From contig DF237013.1 in the NCBI GenBank assembly GCA_000708835.1, forward strand, positions 5,071 through 69,070: a stretch of DNA of 64,000 nt. Direction: 5' to 3'. This DNA is from Klebsormidium nitens (Eukaryota; Plantae; Klebsormidiophyceae). The translations under genes and the position numbers were made by a program. The notes beneath the pieces are model-generated. The model did no database searches. It was given only the letters and a program-made list of their open reading frames with translations, and was not told the DNA's origin. Below are positions 40,840 through 63,658 of this stretch, piece by piece (the first letter of the stretch is position 1; every line of letters starts with the position of its first letter).

Positions 40840-43800
40840 ATGGCTGCCTTAGGGGAAGAGCCGGCTGGACTGGCTCAGGCTGAGCAAGATGCACACCAGC
40901 ATGAGCAGCAACTAGAGCAGCATCATGGGATGCACGAGGGGGCAATGCATGAGGGGGGAATCCATGAGGGGGGGATGCACGAAGGTGGGATGCACGAAGG
41001 TGGGATGCACGAGGGGGTGTTGCACGAGGGTACTCCTGTGCATCAAGGACACCCGGGGCATGAGGATGTGGAAATTGAGGGGGAGGAGTATGACGATGAT
41101 CCGATGTCAGTCAGAGATCCATCGAACACCAAGCAGCTGACCCTGTCGTACCAAGGAGAGGTCTATGTGTTTGACACGGTTCCCCCTGAGAAGGTAAAGG
41201 AACAGCTGAGCATGACATGGTCATCCTTCAGAGCAGTTCCGGATCTTGTAGCAATTTTATGGCTGCTGCAAGAAAGTTGCCGTGCAGTGGTTCATCCGTC
41301 CTTTTCAGGGGTCCGGGCAGGTTTTGTCAGAGTTCTGTAGTTATCTTCTTTGGTGAGCATGGAGCGACCGTTCTGTCTACTTGGAGGTGGCCAGCAGACG
41401 TAACAGGACACAAAGAGGAAGGGTGTCCTTTCCTGTGCATCTTGTGGCTGGGAGTGCAAGAGGTCATTCAAAATTCTGATTTTTCTTGACTGTATATTGT
41501 ACTCAGATGTTTGAATTTGTTGAATCCCTATCAAAGCAGTGGATTCTGACTTTCTTCCAATCATTCAGTGAGCTCCGAGTTGAAGTTAAAGACTGGCAGT
41601 TCAGTACAAACATTCTGTACTTTTCTAATATGTCGATTACTTGCTCAGTGCTAAATTATTATATTCTTGGTTTCCACAGGCTTGTGTAGCTACCTTAGTT
41701 TGTTTTATATTGACTACAGTGGTAATAAGCAGATCTAATATTAGGGGTATCTGCCTCGGACTCTGAGAGGACCCATAAGTGCTGCACCCAGAAGCTTGAT
41801 ATGCCTAAGGGCATATTACCTCAGGCCTGAAGCAAGCCAACCAAAAGCCTGCCCTAGTATCAAGAAGACGATGCTGCAAGGAGCGAATTTGATACTTGAC
41901 AAAGTGCAGCTATTTGCTAGATCAAATTTGCGTGGTACTTGTCCCCCATTTTACCTGCCCCACAAGACGCCAGGTCCAAAAGATTCCGGTTATAAAAAGG
42001 TTCTGTACTTCTAGCTGGCACTGCATGAAAAAACATGTTGAGCTGGCTAGGCTTGCATCTGCCCCTCAAGTAACTCACATATTTGGCTCCTGCTTGCCCA
42101 GGTGCAAGCGGTGCTCCTTCTCCTTGGAAGCCAGGAGACGCCTGCAGGGCTGAGCCTCGCCCAGCTTGGAAAGGTAAGAAGTCTCGGATTGTCCAGCTCC
42201 ACCTCCTACAATGCGATGCAGCATGGTGGTTTGGACTGTATGTTGCAGCCAAACCTTGAATCAGACCGATTGAATGGTTTGGTAATTAAAACTTCGTCAA
42301 GCACAGGCGGTTCCACAAGAAAAATGAGTTTGAGGTGCTTTCAGAGTAAGTGGCTAAGATCTGTTTTGGATTAAAAGATTTGCGTCCAAGTGAGGCTTGC
42401 TCAGAAGTTGGTTTTGCTCAGAGGATTATGGCGCCTACATCTGGTGTGGCCGGGTTGAGTTTCCTCGTTTGTTTTGTTCTGCTCTTGTTCTGCTCCTGTT
42501 GAGCAGAGCGCTGAACTCTGATACATACTCCTGCAAGCACTGTCTCTCGGAATCTTCTTCAAAGTAAAGCTTCCCAAAGTTTTGGTCGTGGTCCCAGCTT
42601 TTGAAAGCATTCCAGTGATTGCCTCTGTAGTCAGGAGATATCTTCCGAGCTGTTCGTGAATGTCTTCCTACCTTGACTTTGCAAAGATATTCTTTGATTG
42701 ACACCAACTTTTCTTTCCAGGGATATGACCTGCCCTCCCGCCTGAACCAGCCTATGAGGCTAGCGTCCCTGCAACGTTTCAGGGAGAAGCGGAAAGAGAG
42801 AAACTATGACAAGAAGATTAGATACTCGGTGCGCAAGGAAGTGGCACAACGGTGAGCTTATGACTTCGCCCCATCAGACAGAGTCATCGTCAGCACTGTG
42901 AACTGTCTTTCTTCATGAATTGATAAGTTACCACCAACTGGGGAACTGCGTGGGGGTGCAACAAACCGCAGCCCCCCATTCATCAAGGGGCCCTATGATG
43001 CAGCTTTGATGATTACTGAGACTTTTGAAGGATGCGGTTTGTCTCTGACTAGGTTCAAAAGGATCAGACACACAAAAGCTAGAGTATGTCGATGCTGTGC
43101 ATTCTGATGGGGATGGGGGGCTCCTGCTGACGTTTTCTTACAATGACGCTTGTTATCTGCAGGATGCAAAGGAAGAAAGGCCAGTTTGCTTCCAACCGAC
43201 CGCAGCCAAGCGATGATGGTTCCGGGGGCGGGGAGTTTGGGTCAGATGGTCAGGCCCACCAGGAGATGACGTGAGCATCCTTGTGATCCTTGTGTTTGTA
43301 CGGTGGGAAATGTTTTATGGTTGATGTAGAGAAAAGCTCAAGTATTTTTTCATTCAGGAAGTGAAGGATCTGGCTTCCATTATCCCGGTGTTCACAGTTC
43401 CTGTAATCTTCGAAATACTTATCATGTTTGTAACGCTTCTGACCACTTGTGTCGACGCGGGTCTGCTGAGGGCTTGCTAGCCGGCCTGCAGACATGTCTC
43501 AATCGATTCCTGATAGTTGTGTCTTCCAAGTGTCTGTTTTGGACGGTTTCTTCCAAGGAGGTAACCTGTGCCTCCCGGAAGTGAGTGAGGGCTTGGGGTG
43601 CACTGCATCATCCTTTTGCAAGTTGATGTCCTTTCAAAAATGGATGATGCGTCAGTCAGCTTGCTTGGGTTGCCTGGATGGTTTGGTTGGGGCTTGAGGC
43701 AAGTAATATTCTTTTGTGTACTGCAACTCTCGCGCACTTAGAGATGGCCACTTTCGACGTGCCTGAGAGCATGGTCATTCCGCAGGCTGCGGCCCTAATT

Positions 43801-53646: not shown

Positions 53647-55565
53647 GAAGATCGGGTCGTGGCTGAGTTGTATACTTCCGAGACTGGAAAGACAGAAACG
53701 AGGAAGTGAGAAAATGGGCCTTTCATCTGTGCTCCGAACGGCAGCCGGAATTCTGCTTTGGGCTTCGCCAAGTTGCTGGAGGCATTCCGAAATCTTAACA
53801 CAACCGAGTTTTCTTGATAGAGGGCATTTACAAAGTGTGCTATTTTGCTATAATGCTCGCTTTGCAGAACCAGATAGCTATCCTGCATGCAGTTTTGAGC
53901 CAAAACGTTGTGCAAGCTAACACGTCAACTGACAGTGTTTGGGATCGATTCGAGTTGAGCATGGACTTTATTGAATAAGTACTAACCAGTCGCGACGAGG
54001 GCCTAAGGGCCTGGCTCCGCAAGTGAAGGTGACAAGATGACACGTGATGCGCGCGTTCCGACGCTTGCATGCGTTGTGCCATAATATAGATTAAAGCGCT
54101 TTGGATTTAAGTTAATGGCGACCCTACGCTTAGAACGATGCAGCCGCTGGCAACGATTCTAAATTGAGCTCCGCAGCAACATACACTCAGCTGCACATGT
54201 GTGCAAGCCATCCGAGTCTTTGCTTGGCTATTTGATTAGTACCTTAGAGGGAGAACATTTAACTACCCACGCGCAGAACCAAGTCGTCCTCGTTCTTACG
54301 AGATCTTTAGCCTAGAGCTTTCTAGGAGTTCAATTAGGGCTACCATAGTGCCGCGGTGCCAAATCGTGCCCACGTGTCCATTCATGCTTCTTAACTAGCC
54401 GGAAGAACATTAGACTCGCGGCCGGATACAGATTTGCCAGATCCTTTGGGCAAGACTACAGTAAGTGGACGGTCCGAAGAGGACAGGGCCCGCGGCTGCT
54501 TTAATGCAAGCTGTAGCTCAATCCTTTGGGCAGCAGCTGGTATAATTTCTGGCATCACTTAAAGTGTCGTCGCTCGGGCACGCACGTGGAATCCATGATC
54601 GATACGCTCTTCATCTCCTATCTTTGGACGCAAGCTAAAAAGCATCTTGTGCTGCCAGAACGCGGCTTGCCTGATGCCCTTGAAAGGGCGAGTCGGACGA
54701 ACCATGGCGCGTAAGAATTCGATTTGAAAGTTTCCATTTTCTGCATCACAAATCACGAGCTACATGTACGTACATGTACGACTCTGCCTAAAGTGCTTCG
54801 CAGGAAATAATCTGGGCAAGAACCGTATCGGGCAGGCGATTGAATGCGAGAAGACAACTTGGCGAGCATGCTTTTGACTCATCGCGTGTCCTCGCAGCAA
54901 GTTGACGTGCATACATGGAAGAAGTACTCCACAACACGCAAGATTCCTCTATCCAGCTGCCATGCTACGGGACCGTCGGCGCTGATCATGAGAAATCGTT
55001 GAATGATAATCGAGGCGTCTAGAGAATGACTAAGATGTCGCTTCACGGTAAGTTTAAGACTAGTGGATTACAATATGGCAAGGATGCTGCAAACCGTACA
55101 AACTGCAAAGCTGGTAGTAGACGAAGCTAGCGAGAGTGTTTAGGTTCACCGCAGGGTTCGTGACTTTATAATGGTTGCAGTTATCCGCGCGCATCCGACA
55201 AAGTTTCGACAGCCAAAATGTTTTGCACTAATAAGCAGCTGGACTGCTCCTGGAGAAGACATTTCCCCTAAGGTTTACTTGCACGCAATTTTACAACGAC
55301 CCGGCTTATTTCGGGTTACACTAACCCGTCCAGTCTTTCTACATTTGACGGTCGACGTGCTGAAACCCACTAAACCAGATTCCTGCGCTAAACAACATGC
55401 CTGCTTATGGGCACCATACGATATCCTCATTTTCGTAGCAGATATGCATATCTACTTCGTCCCGGCCCATCGACTCGCTACGATAATACACCCACGCGTA
55501 CTCCTCCCACTCTAGAACCCGAATCCTGACATGGGCTCCTTTCTCCCGGACCAAGTACCCGGTTC

Positions 55566-58205
55566 TTAAACGCTTGACGCCGGTTCCATCGATTTCTCGG
55601 GATGCCCGGGCTTTCCCCGGAAGGAGCCGTCAGCCTCCAGCTTGGACTCGTAGTTGACGTGGCCCCACGGCATGAAAGGGTCCATCCATTTCGCGTGGCC
55701 GCCGTACAGGGGACACGCGAACAGCCCCGCAATGATGGCGCCGCCAAATTCTGCGCAGATGCAAGCCCAAACTCAGTGGACTCTCCAAGGCGGTACAAGA
55801 GCAACCGACAAGAGCAGATCTCAGAGGGAAATCATCGCTGGTCAGAGTAAATGCCCAAGAGTGTTTGGCGTCAGAATTATCTATTTCTGGAGTTGTAAGG
55901 TTGCTCGAGGACCGTTTCAACGAGGATTGAATGGCCTTTGATTGACTCAAAATTGTCTCGCGAGGTGAGGCCCTGACAAGCGAAGTCCTATCCAACTTTG
56001 TGACACCTGACGGAAAGTAAGGTAACCCACAGAAAACTGCATATGAGCGCCGCTTGTGACTTACAGCATCGCGATCGTGTCCTCCGCTCAGAATGCATTT
56101 TGAATGAACGAAGCCGGAGTAGAAAGTCCAAAGTAAACCTCAAAACCTCCTCCGTCTTGACGAAAGGAGGTTTCTCGTTGCTTCGAGATTATCAAGTACC
56201 GCTTGAACCCCATCTTTCTTGAAGCACGAGAACAGCTCAAAGGTCTCCCTGGGCTCAACTGCCACCAAAAAGCAGCATCCGATTCATACGTCAGTCTGCT
56301 AACAAAGCCTCGAAAACTAACAACGGAAGAACGAAATACGAAGAGAAGCAGCGAAAATACTTACGTCCGAGAATGTAGTAGCCCACTTTATCCCAGTAGC
56401 AGTGGAAGACGCAGGCGGGACCGAGCACACGGACCGGGCTGACACCGCCCCCGGAGAAAGCTGCTGACATAAAGATGACGACCACCAGAGTGAAGCCGGC
56501 AGCGATCGGAGCGACGTTCCCTGAGGACGAACGAAAAGAAGGTTGTTAGTGATGCGGCCAAAACTATATATACAAGTTTGGCGGGGGATTTTGATGACGT
56601 CATTTGGAAGAGAGCAGATTGACGAGGTGACATGAGCAGAGCGATAAAGTCTCGCAAGCGGGCGGAAACAGCTAACTGAGTCCGACAGCTAGGCGAATTT
56701 CGCCCGCGATCTGGACGGAACGAAGTCGTCTGAAAAACAGAACTGTCCCGCCCAGAGCGGTCGAAGCTTCGAAACTCCTCCCAGGCTCAAAAGGCCGTCA
56801 CACGACGGCATCTTCAAAGTGCCCAATAGCGAAACTGGATTACGAGTCCGATGAGCGAATGGTGCCCTCACCAAAGAACCTAGCGGAATTGGAATAGAAG
56901 TCCGGATGAGCAAAAGTTGCCCTCACCGAAAGAGGGGGATCCGATGGCAACGGCGTAAACCACTGAGACGAGGATGAAGGAGTTGAAGAACTCCCAGCCG
57001 AAGAGTTGGCCGTTGGTGGTGGTTGCGCCCGGGGAGAAGCAACCGGGGCCGCTGTCGCCCATGGCAACGCCTGCGCCGGGCACGAGGCCAGCCTGGAAGA
57101 AAGAACCGGGCGAGAATCAGTGGGGGCATTTTGAGGTCGGTGCGAAGTGCAACAATTGTAGTTGGGGAGATCACGTAAGAACCTGAAAACTTGCTATTTC
57201 TTGAAAGATCCTGCCATACGAGCGAGGTTGCGGTCACTGCTGCGCATATGGTGATCAGGAAAGGATGCGCACGAAGAGCTACTTTGCGAGATGCTTAAGT
57301 GCAGATCCCAAAGACGATGGCCTACTTTGTGTTTGTAAAAGGGAAACCGAACCTCCAAATGCGCAACAGAAAGGCGAATGTCCTGGAGAGAAACGCACCA
57401 GTTTAGGAACGAAGCGCCAAGCATCTCAAATCAGTTCAGGCAAAGAGCCATAACCCTGTCAACGCTTACCATGATAAGAGAAGCGAAGATGGCGCCCAGA
57501 AGTTGCGCAAGCATGTAGAGGAGTCCCTTGAGCAGGTCGATATGACCGGTGATCATTGTCGCGATGGTCACGGTGGGGGTGACGTGGCCTCCCGAGATGT
57601 TGGCAATCGCAAAGACTGCAAAGAACGAGGCAAAGTCAGAAACTCTTTGGAGACTCGAGAGAGGGTTTTTCCAAACGACGAGAGGCTGGATTCACTCCTG
57701 ACGGCGGCTGGGATTAGGGACAGCTGATAGCTGTTTGGTGCAGAGAGCAGGCAAGCACGGGCTGGACACCTTTTGTTTTGGAGAGTGGTTGAATAGAAGG
57801 AGTCGAAGCCAAGAAGAGATAAAACGCCAGGCAGTACTGCTCTTTGATTACCAGCTGGTTTCACTAACGCAGTCGTTTAGCAGATTCCTCGGGGCCCGCA
57901 GGACTTTACATAGCATACTCTATGCCTTGAAGAGCATTCCATGAGCCCAGCAGTTTTAGATTGTCTGCAGCAAGAAGCATGATCAAGTTCAGCTTTGATG
58001 ACTTACTGACGATCATCAGTGCCAAGCCGTTGGCGAAAGCTGCCATGACCACATTTGGGGGGGGTGCCAGTGGCCCTGTCGCAACATAGAGCGCTGAACC
58101 CCCCGCAAGGGCAAACACCAGGGACCCAAAGAATTCAGCCAGCACTGCGCTGACATATTTGATGGAGCCAAAGTGAAGGGGAGGGGTCTCAAGAAGGCCC
58201 GGCAT
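55566..58205 (-). CDS. Major intrinsic protein (aquaporin family, algal MIPD-like) with non-canonical NPA boxes, 283 aa, 5 coding exons
   Basis: Exons 58205-58007, 57615-57470, 57092-56927, 56520-56365, 55750-55566 (852 nt). Motifs: AVLAEFFGSLVF, ANISGGHVTPTVT, YMLAQLLGAI, GQLFGWEFFNSFILVSVVYAVAIGSPSFGNVAP, FSGGGVSPVRVLGPACVFHCYW, YILG|QFGGAIIAG. Confidence 0.92.
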
Positions 58206-59349
58206 TTTGGCTGATGGGGTGGCTCACGAATGAGATCTGCAGAGAGGAGAAAGCAGGGCAATGTTAGTTAATGAATCTGGGGCAACGTTTTCTTTCAAAC
58301 AATTGTATTCTAGCATAACCTTCTGTGCTTCTGTCTAGTTGTTGAAGACTTGCAAAGGAAATGTGGAGTGGATCCAATCATACAAGGTGAGCCAAGATCG
58401 ACAATTTGAGAGCTTGACGACAGCTGGCACTAAAGAATGAGAAACGTTTGTTTGCAGGGAAGAATCAATGAGAAGGAAGTTCTAGAGACAGAATAAGAGA
58501 ATGAGGCAATAAGTACCATGCATATTCCCTGACGTTCTTTAAGAGAAGTGCAACTTTGTGGCAGCTCATACAAAAGAACCTCAACTTCATCACACTTTAT
58601 CACTCCCCATCCTCAGTCTCGCAGGTCCCTCCACTGAAGAAGTCTTTACCCCTCCTCAGACTCTGCTCAAAGCTAGCTCACGAAGACAGACGAACATTTT
58701 TGAAAAGGAAGTCCATCAAGTTGCATCGTGCATCGCAGCAATGTTGTGTTTCCATACGTACCTGGCGCTAGCTGGGCCGACGTGTGCGAGGATCACGCAA
58801 GGGCTCTCAACCTGTTTGCAGTGCGGATTTGATTTGGCAGTGTCTCAGCTGCTCACTTCCTCTGTGACGAGTTCAAGAAGCAAAATACCAAAAGTGAAGT
58901 GGAGGTTGGGAGCACGATTGAGCTGACGAAGAATCTTTAGAAGTGGGAAAGAGTAGAAGTGCCAGTTATATACGTACTCATACGTCTTTGCCAAGGAGAT
59001 GCCAAGAGTCGCGTTCAAAGCTAAGAGCTATATATCTGCAGTTTTTGCAGTCTAGCATAGTGTGCTTCCGACTTCCGAGTCCATTATCATGCGACCACGG
59101 GCTAGAATGTGGGACTCAGCTCGTGGACTCAAGAAGAACTTCGTCGCGCGCTCTTCGATAGACCACAGAATTTAATATGTACTGCTTCTATGGGACTTAT
59201 TCAAAGTGGTCCTTCAACCAGCCATAAGCATGAGCCACTTGAGGCACCGAATGCGGCAGCCATTATTACTGCGCCGCTACCGCAGTAATCGATCTCTTTT
59301 CTCGCAAGACTGGCGGGCCAGAAATGGGCCCTCCTATAGACTCTAGTAT

Positions 59350-59890
59350 AGTACGTGGTCTTCCGCCGCTTCTCAGCGACTTCACCCCGGTCATCACCGC
59401 CCCTATCGGTCGCCCCCCGGGCTTGGACTTGGAATTTACATGGTGCACGGGGGCTCATTTTGAGCCAATCAGCGCGTGTGGAGGCCAATTTTGCGGGAGT
59501 CATTTTTGACGTCATGCGTTGTGCACGTGACGTGGCCATTTGCGAGCCCCGTGTTGGCAATCTGCAATGATGGCTTTTCGCCCGGAATTGCGCGGCGGCG
59601 GCGGCGCGCAACGCTGTGCAGTGCATGATGCACTTGAGATATCGCCCCAATATGAGTCTCCATGAAGAGTCCACAGCCCAGCTAGTACCCAGCTACCTAA
59701 CTTACCTACATTAGACTTGTAGGTAGTGGGGGCAGAAATTCTAGATGAGCTTGACACAACTTCGCGGAAGCCAGTTTCCAAATGGAGTTTTATGGACCAC
59801 TTTAACCTAGGCAAACTCGGAAGATTGATCGGCCCGTGACGTCAGAGATCGTGCTGACATCCATGGGGGCCATTCCGGTGCACGTGCTTA
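59350..59890. promoter_or_regulatory. Divergent promoter region between MIP and 1-Cys Prx with clustered ACGT-core (G-box/ABRE/C-box) and CCAAT motifs
   Basis: ACGTGG 59353, CCAAT 59465 and 59485, TGACGTCA 59507, CACGTG 59524, ACGTGGC 59530, TGACGTCA 59837, CACGTG 59881. Function is inferred only. Confidence 0.4.
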
Positions 59891-60294
59891 TGAGGGGCTC
59901 ACGTCCTTTGCAGTACCTACTGCGAGTGCGACGCATTTCCACACAGGTTGAATCACAACTTTCCTTAGCTCAAAAGTGGGCCCTCATCATGTGCCGAACA
60001 ATAGAGCAATCCTAAGAACTCACCCCTAATTTGCATTCCTTCCTTGCGAACCCTACAGACCCGGTCGCAGATCAGCGAATGCAATAAGATAAAGGCTTCT
60101 GCCCCCTTAACCCCAGCCAGATCCTCAGCTACTTAAAGCTCCGTGTCTTTCCGTCATTCTCAAACTTCAACTCGCCGAGCTTCCTTTGCTTTCAAGCATC
60201 CAAAAGCTCCTGCTTCTGTTCTCAGCTCCCAGAACAAGACTCTGTACCCGCCTTGCAACCAGTCAGATTCTTCTTATCTTCAAAGTCAGCAGCA

Positions 60295-63200
60295 ATGGCG
60301 GCAGTCCCTTCCGGAGCTGAGGCTTATGCGAAGCTGTATCCTGAGACGTCCAGCGATGGGGTAAGCCGCAGAAGCTCCAAATGTGCTCCTCGCTGTTGTA
60401 TCCTTGTTTTCATCTGGCGCATCAGTTGGTATTGCACCTCAGTGTGTGGCGTTTGCTGCTCATCTGCTGAAAAGTGGGCAGGTACGATCTGGGTCTAAGC
60501 CTCAATGATGAGAGTGTGAAGGGCTCAGTTTGTGGGGCATCACGAAGGGTGTTTATGCAATTCCAGCAACTCTATATTTAATTCTCTGAGCTTATTGCTG
60601 CTTGTCCTTTGGCGTAGGCAAGTGTGTCTCTCACAAAGTGTCACATGCATCAGTCTCTTCAGCATTGAGATTTTGCAACGAAGTGGGCTGGGGCCTTACG
60701 TCTAGGGGTTCGGAAAAGCTCATCTTTTGCGCTGATCTAAAGTAGAGGAACCCTTGGCATCCTCTCTGAATTGCTAATAAAACGTACCAATTGCTTCCTA
60801 AGAAGACCAAGCACTTCTTGCTTCCGCATTCTGATACTTATGTTCGAGTAAAGGTCACCTCTCCCCTGTGACTCTCTTTCTTTCTGGCACAGGAGTTCAA
60901 TAAGAAATTCCTGAATTGACATGGTCGGTGAAAGAAGATCAACTAATGTGAAATTTTACCCACCTGCAGGTGCTCCGCCTGGGCAACATTGCCCCTGACT
61001 TCTCCGCAGAAACCACCAAGGGCCCCATGCCTAGTTTCCACAAGTGGATCGATGGGCACTGGGCCATCCTCTTCTCTCACCCTGCAGACTTCACCGTGAG
61101 TGTATTTCTCCCGTCCTCTTGGGTTCCTAAAGCTTGAACTCTTCTAAGATATTTCTGAGGCTTCTCCTCAACAAGTCGGTCAAAAAGCAGGAGCACTGTG
61201 CCCGCAATTGCTGATAAAAGTCTGAATGGAGGCGAGTTGCTATAAGGCTGTATATGGGCTATAAGCTTCTTTCGCCTCCCTCGCAAAGAGTCATCAGAGC
61301 AGCCCACTACGATGGTCGAGTCTATTCAACTTTTGGCTCGAGGTGCTGAACCATCATTCAGCATTCCAACTGCATCAGCGGAAGGAAAAATTGCCATAAT
61401 TCTGCACGACTCTCCAAGTGGGCATTCGGTAGGCGAGTATGGAGAGTCATTGGGCACTTTAACGGACTCTTATTTCTGGCCTCTTTTGCAGCCGGTGTGC
61501 ACCACTGAGATCGGCCGGTTGGCCCTCAAGTACGACTACCTCAACTCCATCGGTGTCAAGCTGGCCACCCTCTCCTGCGACCCCGTGAGTCTACCATGCC
61601 TAGTTCTCTGAAGGGACAGCTCTTTTTTATACAAGTTCTCTATTTACAACGACACTTCAAAAAATGTGGATTTTGCTTGGACGAGTGCTCTACCAAAGAT
61701 CGGGCACTTCATTCATCTCGAAGCTTGGGGTGTTGGAAGCGCTAGCCAGAGATAGAGCTAATTCCCTGCACTTCCAAATCTAAAATTCCTGAATAGCCAG
61801 TCTTCGAACAGGAATCTTTAGGGTTCCGCTTCTGCGCCGTCCGGATCGTAGCGAACTTGATTCCAGCTTCAGACTGCCCCAGGATCTCTGCCGTTCGCAA
61901 GTCGCCTCAAGAAGACAGAACCCATCATACGGTCTCGTGTGCAAAGCTATATAGGACTAGATGCTTTCGCGCTCAAATAGTCTCGCACAAAGTTATGATC
62001 TTGCCCTGATTCTGTTTCTGACCATACTTTTCCCCCCCCGAAAACAGGTGAGCAGCCACACCAAGTGGCTGGAGGATGTGGTGGCGCACTGCGAGAACAA
62101 GATCACGATCGACTTCCCCATCATTGCTGACCCCACGCGCGAGATCAGCGTCAAGTACGGCATGCTGGACCCCACCATCAAGGACAAGGAGGGCCTGCCC
62201 CTCACCTGCCGCGCCGTCTTCATCATCGGTGAGAGGAGGTCTCTCGCATCTAGTTGGCCAGTTGACTTCGGAGAAGGTCGTGGGTCTCTGCGCATGTGGT
62301 TGGCGATCCATGTTTTCGAACGTCGTTGGTTCTCGTTAAGATGCTCTCCGGCGTTTCCACAGCAGTATCTTATACCTCCTTTGTACAGGCACGCCCACAG
62401 CAGTATCTTATACCTCCTTTGTACAGGCACGCAGACAGTGACTCGGGTCTAGCAAACAGTTTGTAAATACAGGACGCCATTTGAGTTCGTGTCTCTGCTC
62501 GGGCAAGGTTTCAAAAATCGTCGTCCTTTTCTCATCTTCCATTGCCGATCCGCAACGTGCTTGGAAAGTTAGAAACCTTTGCTTCGTCTTCAAAGCGACC
62601 GCTCCGTCCGTTCTCTGAAATGTCAAGACAAGTCACCGAAGCAAAGCTCGCTCCCCTCTGACTTCCCTGACAGAGCCACAGGCATCCTCGCTCGACGCAC
62701 TCTGAGTCCCTTCTCTTTTCTTTGCAGGCCCCGACAAGAAGCTGAAGCTGTCTCTGAACTACCCCGCTTCCGTCGGCCGCAACATGGACGAGATTGTGCG
62801 AGTGACGGACGCCCTCATGCTCTCCGCCAAGCACTCCATCGTAAGTCCCTCCTACCTGCTCCTTAGAAAGAAAGTCGGGTGCTGGCGGAGTTGCTGAAAG
62901 TGTTAGCGAGGGCCACCGTTCGAAAAGCTGCCGTGAAAGCGTGACTCTTTCTCGGTTGAAGGGCCGTACAAGAAACGCCGACATCAGCGCTCTTACAAAG
63001 TAGTACCCACTTGAAATGTCGACCTCGTGTGGGTTCGGGGTCGCAAAGATGGAAAGACCGATAGCGTGCACGCTTTGGCTTTCGAGCGCAGCACGTTCGT
63101 GGAGTCCCGTCACGGAAGATCGCTGACAGTCCCCTTTTGCCCCCGCTCTGGCTCCTCTGCGCCGTACTGCTCCCATCCGCGTCCTCGTTGCTTCCATGAC

Positions 63201-63658
63201 CTTCGCATCGTATTCACAGAAAGGCCTGCTTCAGTAATCCTAGTAATCCTAGTAATCCTAGTAATCCTAGTAATCCTAGTAATCCTAATAATCCTAGTAA
63301 TCCTCTTGCTAGATCAGCTTCCCTCCTTCCTTTCCATAACCCCTCCCGCGAGCACCCTCCGCCAATTGGCTCAAGATTAGAAACCAGCGCCGAATTCCTG
63401 CTCCGATCTCTTTCACAACCGAAGTCTTTCTCCTAACCCACCATTCCTGTTTCCTAACCCCTATTCCTCGCTGCGCAGGCACTCCCCGCGAACTGGCCCA
63501 ACAACCACGAGAGCATCGGCATGAAGGGCTCCGCGTTTTTGCTGCCCACCGTGACCAAGGAAGACGCGCAAAAGTACTTCCCGGGATACAAGACGTGCGC
63601 GGTGCCGTCGGGCGTAGAGTACCTCCGCCTAACCAAGATCGAAGACCTGAAGTTGTAG
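60295..63658 (+). CDS. PER1: 1-Cys peroxiredoxin (Prx6 family), 6 exons
   Basis: Exons 60295-60360, 60970-61095, 61492-61584, 62048-62228, 62728-62840, 63479-63658. Motifs: WAILFSHPADFT|PVCTTEIG (peroxidatic Cys), DFPIIADPTREISVKYGMLDP, PLTCRAVFIIG|PDKKLKLSLNYPASVGRNMDEIVRV, PSGVEYLRLT. Confidence 0.96.
62357..62432. repeat. Perfect 38-bp tandem duplication in Prx intron 4
   Basis: CCACAGCAGTATCTTATACCTCCTTTGTACAGGCACGC x2. Confidence 0.95.
63233..63304. repeat. 9-bp minisatellite (AGTAATCCT)x8 in Prx intron 5
   Basis: Eight units, the seventh being AATAATCCT. Confidence 0.97.

Follow-up and report, generated by a model that had tools for sequence, protein, structure and literature searches.

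The locus considered here raises the question of whether an aquaporin can lose the asparagine of both of its Asn-Pro-Ala (NPA) boxes and still be kept as a working channel. It lies in a 64,000-nucleotide stretch (hereafter the window) of the genome of the streptophyte alga Klebsormidium nitens (assembly GCA_000708835.1, contig DF237013.1, positions 5,071 to 69,070 of the forward strand), where an earlier note, made from the sequence alone, had pointed out a gene that belongs to the major intrinsic protein (MIP) superfamily with both boxes replaced, by TPT and SPV. What our analysis adds is an Asn-less clade of the MIPD family that spans Chlorophyta and Streptophyta and is paired with a 1-Cys peroxiredoxin; what was known before is a shortened public entry named "aquaporin".

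Loop B of the encoded protein reads SGGHV-TPT-VT (codons ACC CCC ACC for the box) and loop E reads SGGGV-SPV-RVLGPA (codons AGC CCG GTC), as established both by direct reading and by a script. In HMMER alignments to solved aquaporins, TPT coincides with the NPA box that AQP2 has in loop B, and SPV with the one that NIP2-1 and TIP2-1 have in loop E. Together with the exact codon positions these alignments bear out the replacement of both motifs: asparagine is gone from each, with Thr79 and Ser198 standing in its place, and proline is retained in each. The note had called such a double loss rare, in agreement with a report that any change of these asparagines occurs in fewer than 16 of 1008 MIPs (PMC3245135). 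The Glu residues of transmembrane helices TM1 and TM4 are intact. Position counting gives an aromatic/arginine (ar/R) filter of N59, I186, G195 and R201, and the same four residues (N/I/G/R) are obtained by aligning an orthologue (P0165, see below) to AtTIP2;1 (5I32), so that the by-eye filter proposed in the note was correct.

The gene occupies the minus strand and is composed of five coding exons, with an 852-nt coding sequence (CDS) for 283 amino acids and introns that are all GT-AG (Table 1). The Pfam family MIP (PF00230) matches exon 2 (55.8 bits, 7e-15) and exon 4 (25.3 bits, 1.5e-5); exons 1, 3 and 5, searched singly against Pfam, gave no match, which we attribute to their short length. 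The codon of Gln223, at the usual position of the H6 proline, straddles the junction of exons 4 and 5. Fourteen public runs contain about 0.2-0.3 of the sampled words of the locus, which equals its exon fraction. The label of the runs ("RNA?") is a guess, their transcript nature being read from intron-less contigs with untranslated regions (UTRs). Such contigs from four runs, representing four studies and two organism labels, cover the MIP locus (compared over 55300-58500), and in each run a single contig of 1.8-2.0 kb reproduces the four predicted junctions exactly, with zero differing letters and zero indels. A further 553 contig letters set the 5' end of the transcript at about 59317, beyond a 5'UTR intron whose joint appears at 58239/58765 because three bases (CAG) fit on both sides; the 3'UTR is longer than 500 nt. 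The gene is expressed in the ordinary cultures of these four studies, and the exact agreement of the spliced contigs with the gene model excludes both an assembly error and a lack of expression. The description of an intact gene with clean introns and a full frame thus holds at the level of the transcript, in which every base and junction is reproduced and no Asn codons appear at the two boxes.

An exhaustive search with exon 2, along with word-indexed searches in which full-length relatives were the queries, brought up the public protein "aquaporin [Klebsormidium nitens]" (P0168, 220 aa, carrying PF00230), which matches residues 64-283 of our model without a difference. This public protein begins at the internal Met64 and is devoid of 63 N-terminal residues, i.e. 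TM1, most of TM2 and the filter residue Asn59. The MPGLLETP N-terminus of the longer model is homologous to the MPGLLQTP N-termini of its relatives and is covered by RNA contigs, and the extended model thus corrects a shortened public annotation. Among the thirteen K. nitens MIPs listed by Becker et al. 2020 (PMC7289719, Table S1) the sole 220-aa entry, GAQ80844.1, is marked "?" (not assignable); it is probably the same protein as P0168, the two being equated by length alone. The supplements of Irisarri 2024 include K. subtile, with K. nitens and GAQ80844 absent from them.

The resemblance to chlorophyte MIPD proteins suggested in the note is supported by both diagnostic residues and phylogeny. 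Like members of MIPD, as defined by Anderberg, Danielson & Johanson 2011 (PMC3111385), the K. nitens protein has the H6 proline replaced (by Gln223, ILGQFGG; Gln, Glu or His in MIPD), a Gln at H3 (Gln104, LAQLLG), two cysteines (Cys133, GPGCF, in loop C and Cys211, FHCYW, after half-helix HE), an Asn at H2 (Asn59) and an Arg at LE2. The H6 residue is E, Q, H, N or D in its relatives and Pro in the TIP examined and in bacterial MIPs; both cysteines are conserved in nearly all rows of the family and absent from the bacterial outgroup. In the tree the 59-row family is split with 100/100 support, on a long branch, from a land-plant TIP and from bacterial MIPs. It contains the two proteins on which, in place of the original eight reference sequences, the MIPD name was anchored, MIP1 of Chlamydomonas sp. 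ICE-L and a protein of Chlorella variabilis NC64A, both N-A-A-R with NPA/NPA. A land-plant TIP (P0190) has a filter of H-I-G-R, a proline at H6 and no loop C cysteine, and falls outside the MIPD clade. Three intron positions are common to K. nitens and two metagenome contigs (L001 and L002), and the H6 intron, as judged from the ends of tblastn blocks, is apparently common to K. nitens, Trebouxia and Apatococcus.

MIPA to MIPE have been described as restricted to Chlorophyta (PMC11316224, PMC3111385), and the K. nitens protein extends MIPD to a streptophyte. On the other hand, the Asn-less clade nests in a group (96/86 support) that otherwise consists purely of trebouxiophyte sequences. The data are compatible with an ancient paralogue lost elsewhere and with a transfer between terrestrial algae, the two being equally likely, so that of the proposed "MIPD lineage retained in a streptophyte" the presence of MIPD stands and its retention is no likelier than transfer.

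The loss of both asparagines is not peculiar to K. nitens. It is common to two metagenome contigs, three Logan transcript proteins, Apatococcus and Trebouxia, with TPT/SPA in L001 and L002 (syntenic) and in the transcript proteins P0165 and P0268; TPS/SPA in the third transcript protein (P0270), in Apatococcus fuscideae and A. lobatus and in Trebouxia sp. C0005; and TPI/SPV in Trebouxia sp. C0004 and A1-2. The consensus of the clade is SGGH-I-T-P-[T/S/I]-VTI in loop B and GGG-V-S-P-[A/V]-RVLGPA in loop E, and its support is 100/100 in each of three maximum-likelihood trees. The identity of the K. nitens protein to those of Trebouxia and Apatococcus is 51-58%. The filter of the clade is N-(I/L)-(G/S)-R, that of its sister group (Symbiochloris and Trebouxia, NPA/NPA) N-V-T-R. 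Clade members use ACC, ACG, ACT or ACA for the Thr and AGC or AGT for the Ser. Since Thr is always ACN and Ser always AGY, each one change away from AAY, the codons support a single origin of the variant, with one nucleotide step leading from AAY to ACN and one from AAY to AGY.

One sequence departs from this pattern. P0166, found in three RNA runs (ERR12684107-9; L004-L006), has NPA/NPA boxes with AAC/AAC codons and an N-I-G-R filter, and in free trees it is placed inside the clade, on a long branch, as a sister to the K. nitens protein (98/99). An approximately unbiased test that kept it outside the clade gave p = 0.149, i.e. its exclusion is not rejected. P0166 either kept its NPA/NPA boxes, as a sister lineage, or regained them by reversion.

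Substitution patterns indicate that strong purifying selection maintains the Asn-less variant. Between L001 and L002 (both TPT/SPA) dN/dS is 0.051 at a dS of 0.69, and exon 2 of the window differs from that of a closely related contig (L003) by 7 synonymous and 0 non-synonymous changes. Thr and Ser are preserved through synonymous codon turnover, and loops B and E (SGGHITPxVTIATMITGH and GGGVSPxRVLGPA) are among the best-conserved segments of the clade. A dN/dS of 0.05, together with Thr and Ser being upheld despite synonymous changes, argues against decay. The search for relatives called for in the earlier note thus returned orthologues of the TPx/SPx type, with a ratio far from the value near 1 expected of a decaying gene.

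Several observations concern the relatives themselves. In A. lobatus the MIP gene has been duplicated locally (L010, 11944-14723): about 2 kb downstream of the first copy, and separated from it by a small gene, there is another member of the clade, with TPS in loop B. The Trebouxia orthologues seem to be wrongly annotated in their public models: P0173 (sp. A1-2) is devoid of most of TM3, P0167 (sp. C0004) of the N-terminus and P0277 of loop B, and what these models lack is encoded in the genomic DNA of L011. The first intron of the orthologues has an apparent GC donor at the same position in L001 (5357/5680, GCAAGG) and L002 (5751/5965, GCACGT), both junctions being derived from protein alignment only. 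Many of the top matches to exon 2 (P0003, P0004, P0014, P0021 and others) measure about 930-1460 aa and contain 4-8 stretches that look like MIPs; they are reminiscent of the multi-domain 'SAR IX' MIPs to which Irisarri et al. 2024 refer.

The effect of the replacement on the fold was assessed with an AlphaFold2 model of the orthologue P0165 (TPT/SPA, 62% identical to the K. nitens protein), computed from a 58-row family alignment (pLDDT 88.5, pTM 0.84). The model has six transmembrane helices and two re-entrant half-helices (15-45, 52-74, HB 80-89, 94-118, 142-165, 174-189, HE 199-209 and 213-238). The half-helices begin at Pro80 and Pro199, and therefore Thr79 and Ser198 are predicted to occupy the N-cap positions that are usually held by Asn. 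The top PDB matches of the model are all aquaporins, the best of them being AtTIP2;1 (5I32; TM-score 0.88 normalised to the target, 31% identity).

The K. nitens gene stands head-to-head with a gene for a 1-Cys (Prx6-type) peroxiredoxin, with less than 1 kb between the start of the MIP transcript and the peroxiredoxin ATG. The coding blocks of the peroxiredoxin gene are 75-85% identical (tblastn) to the neighbours of the MIP genes in L001, L002, L010 and L011. The same divergent pair occurs in L001, L002, A. lobatus and Trebouxia sp. A1-2, with about 0.5 kb separating the annotated genes in the latter two. A peroxiredoxin thus adjoins the MIP in all five genomic loci of the Asn-less clade, and none was found within 10 kb in the four NPA/NPA MIPD loci (Symbiochloris, Trebouxia C0009, Chlorella vulgaris and Coccomyxa elongata); the difference (5/5 vs 0/4) corresponds to a Fisher p of 0.008 among loci that are kin by descent and have inherited their synteny. 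Retention of a divergent pair across the chlorophyte-streptophyte divide is unusual and suggests shared regulation, movement as a unit, or both.

The intergenic region of K. nitens holds, within 59500-59900, CACGTGACGTGGC, a second CACGTG and five TGACGT/ACGTCA elements (about 0.4 expected). G-box and TGACGT elements are enriched in the intergenic regions of K. nitens and L001, a single G-box is present in L002, and no enrichment of either element was seen in those of Apatococcus or Trebouxia. A promoter element conserved across the pairs was consequently dropped as a candidate, no evidence having emerged of a cis-element shared by K. nitens, L001, L002, Apatococcus and Trebouxia.

Table 1. 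Features of the MIP/peroxiredoxin locus in the window (position 1 is the first letter of the window)
Feature	Position	Strand	Evidence and remarks
3'UTR	55300..55565	-	RNA contigs; runs about 270 nt further below 55300
CDS exon 5	55566..55750	-	TM6, PLYG block, C-terminal tail; stop TAA 55568-55566
CDS exon 4	56365..56520	-	TM5, H5 Ile186, loop E, LE1 Gly195, SPV 56440-56432, LE2 Arg201, Cys211 (HCYW)
CDS exon 3	56927..57092	-	Loop C with conserved Cys133 (GPGCF), TM4; RNA junctions
CDS exon 2	57470..57615	-	Loop B half-helix, TM3, SGGHV-TPT 57580-57572, H3 Gln104; Pfam MIP and RNA junctions
Last 31 nt of 5'UTR and CDS exon 1	58007..58236	-	ATG 58205 (CDS portion 58205-58007), MPGLLETP..., TM1, TM2, H2 filter Asn59
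5'UTR intron	58237..58761	-	GTACGT...TGCAG; RNA contigs; GT..AG
5'UTR exon 1 of the MIP transcript	58762..59317	-	RNA contig continuation at 58765-58794; upper end approximate (end of the longest contig)
Divergent intergenic region of MIP and peroxiredoxin	59318..60294	.	Holds CACGTGACGTGGC and several TGACGT elements
1-Cys (Prx6-type) peroxiredoxin gene, PVCTTE	60295..63655 (end approximate)	+	Six coding blocks by tblastn; Pfam AhpC-TSA on three exons; ATG 60295

Elsewhere in the window an open reading frame at 40840-41340 (plus strand) matches the tify domain (PF06200, 3e-11) and also contains a repeat rich in His, Glu and Gly (HEGGMHEGG...). The tify domain occurs chiefly in plants, in keeping with a streptophyte, and the frame is probably an exon of a ZIM/TIFY-type gene.

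Comparison with characterized MIPs delimits what is unusual about the new clade. The type member of MIPD, CrMIP1 of Chlamydomonas (CrMIPD1;1), was reported to be glycerol-permeable, and MIPD1 combines N-A-A-R with NPA/NPA (PMC3111385). [quoted passage not shown] Published MIPD filters (N-A-A-R for MIPD1; T-L-S-R, S-T-A-R and N-A-T-H for MIPD2-4) are not matched by the N-I-G-R of K. nitens, which agrees with MIPD1 only at the H2 Asn and the LE2 Arg. Unlike MIPD1, the Asn-less clade has N-(I/L)-G-R, and unlike MIPD as described so far it includes a streptophyte. Unlike its T-P-x/S-P-x boxes, those of all eight published MIPDs keep the Asn (NPA, NPL or NPT with NPA). With AtTIP2;1, an ammonia- and water-permeable tonoplast aquaporin, the K. 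nitens protein shares three of the four filter residues (I, G and R), whereas AtTIP2;1 has a His at H2, a Pro at H6, NPA/NPA boxes and no loop C cysteine. Non-canonical boxes, one or both, are also found in SIPs, AQP11/12, LIPs (NPM), MIPB (NPS/NAA), TbAQP2 (NSA/NPS) and the trypanosomatid AQP-gamma (NPM/NPS). All of these retain the first-residue Asn; in contrast, the K. nitens protein has lost it from both boxes and kept the Pro. An aquaglyceroporin of the SPA type in Burkholderia cenocepacia, reportedly described by Wree and co-workers in 2011, is said to have Ser in place of the NPA Asn as a helix cap. To our knowledge, only one box is affected in that variant, and it is not a conserved eukaryotic clade. 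Several MIPs with unusual boxes have unusual substrates; TbAQP2, for example, takes up pentamidine, and restoring NPA/NPA blocks the uptake (PMC8355241). In the literature we found neither the T-P-x/S-P-x clade, nor its place within MIPD, nor its pairing with a peroxiredoxin described.

Gene structure, expression and the motif are observed here, as are the clade and the selection on it, the family membership, the fold and the synteny; from these we infer a wider pore, a class of substrates and a co-regulated neighbour. The reading that we prefer, with moderate confidence, is that the protein is a functional channel for solutes, that its selectivity is altered, and that it is co-regulated with the peroxiredoxin, the two serving as a stress pair. 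Thr and Ser, which are good and common helix N-cap residues, would cap both half-helices, with the six-helix fold and the helix-dipole field persisting. The centre of the pore would lose two amide hydrogen-bond donors and gain two shorter hydroxyl side chains. With a Gly at LE1, no aromatic residue at H2 and an outer filter, Asn-(Ile/Leu)-Gly-Arg, that resembles that of TIP2, the pore would probably be wider, less water-specific and chemically unlike that of a water channel, and the channel would most likely pass small neutral solutes, not strictly water. Leading candidates for its substrate are hydrogen peroxide or related small molecules and small polyols; a specific peroxide role is a more tentative proposition and, taken by itself, somewhat unlikely. 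As the divergent promoter region is common to the pair in every locus examined, the MIP and the 1-Cys peroxiredoxin may constitute a co-regulated oxidative or desiccation stress pair.

A bolder version, which we offer as rather doubtful, is that of a two-gene module under one divergent promoter, in which the Thr/Ser pore would conduct H2O2 (or a related oxidant or polyol) to or from the peroxiredoxin compartment during desiccation and rehydration; the module would either date back to the common ancestor that green algae share with land plants or have passed as one unit between terrestrial algae (Trebouxiophyceae and Klebsormidiophyceae), and P0166 would be a reversion.

Of the alternatives, the one that survives best is an ordinary water or water/glycerol channel in which Thr and Ser take over the capping from Asn and the adjacency of the peroxiredoxin is an inherited accident of gene order. 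The fold (as modelled for P0165), the ar/R Arg, the TM1 and TM4 Glu residues and the half-helices are all intact, the capping by Ser and Thr is in line with general knowledge of these residues, and the closest tree relative of the K. nitens protein, P0166, is NPA/NPA, suggesting easy interconversion. We nevertheless regard this explanation as unlikely, given that the replacement of Asn in fewer than 16 of 1008 MIPs (PMC3245135) reflects a strong general constraint, that both positions were changed and then fixed across lineages with saturated dS, and that in the Asn-less clade the filter moved as well, N-(I/L)-G-R having replaced N-A-A-R or N-V-T-R.

Less probable still is an ion-permeable MIP, in which a weakened central cation filter would let through not only neutral solutes but also small cations or ammonium. 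The NPA Asn has been described as a barrier to inorganic cations (PMC8355241 and PMC3245135, both citing Wu 2009 and Wree 2011), and the nearest solved structure is that of the ammonia-permeable TIP2;1. However, Arg201 and both half-helix dipoles are retained, and expression was seen in the ordinary cultures of four studies even though an unchecked leak of cations would come at a cost.

The earlier note had also considered a non-conducting or regulatory MIP. Such a protein might, for example, modulate hetero-tetramers or have another role inside the cell. Unorthodox NPA boxes are indeed typical of the poorly permeable intracellular SIP and AQP11/12 (PMC4022174, PMC11316224). On the other hand, the pore-lining loops B and E are the best conserved, which would be unexpected if the pore no longer mattered, the ar/R Arg is conserved, and no close MIPD partner from K. 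nitens was present among the matches found; all this makes a non-conducting role improbable. Finally, an artefact, whether from faulty assembly or annotation, from a pseudogene or from a trebouxiophyte contaminant scaffold, is negligibly likely despite the nesting of the clade among trebouxiophyte sequences and the truncated public model, since each base and each junction recurs in four independent sets of RNA data (which, with a dN/dS of 0.05, rules out assembly error and pseudogene), the public record puts the protein on a 251-kb contig, a tify-domain gene lies in the same window, and identity to the Trebouxia and Apatococcus proteins is just 51-58%.

Several points weigh against the solute channel coupled to the peroxiredoxin. 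The five syntenic loci share descent, so the Fisher test overstates their independence, and gene adjacency proves neither co-regulation nor a shared substrate. With P0166 placed inside the clade in the free tree, the Asn-less state is apparently not irreversible and may be inessential to the basic role of the clade. The predicted fold was obtained with a 62% identical orthologue, not with the K. nitens protein. Lastly, the mutagenesis literature on the NPA Asn and cation exclusion could point to an ion leak and not to solute selectivity; as far as the work of Wree et al. 2011 is represented in the papers citing it (PMC3245135 and PMC8355241), its mutagenesis linked the NPA Asn to the exclusion of cations.

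No feature of aquaporins is more conserved than the two NPA asparagines, whose roles in orienting water and excluding protons and cations have been studied almost entirely with artificial mutants. A natural, expressed clade under purifying selection, together with a close NPA/NPA relative, makes the role of the pore centre testable with natural proteins; if P0166 is indeed a reversion, it would provide a natural before-and-after pair for the role of the two asparagines. Klebsormidium inhabits soil crusts, Trebouxia is a lichen photobiont and Apatococcus forms biofilms. In such air-exposed, desiccation-tolerant algae the pairing with a peroxiredoxin offers a concrete physiological hypothesis.

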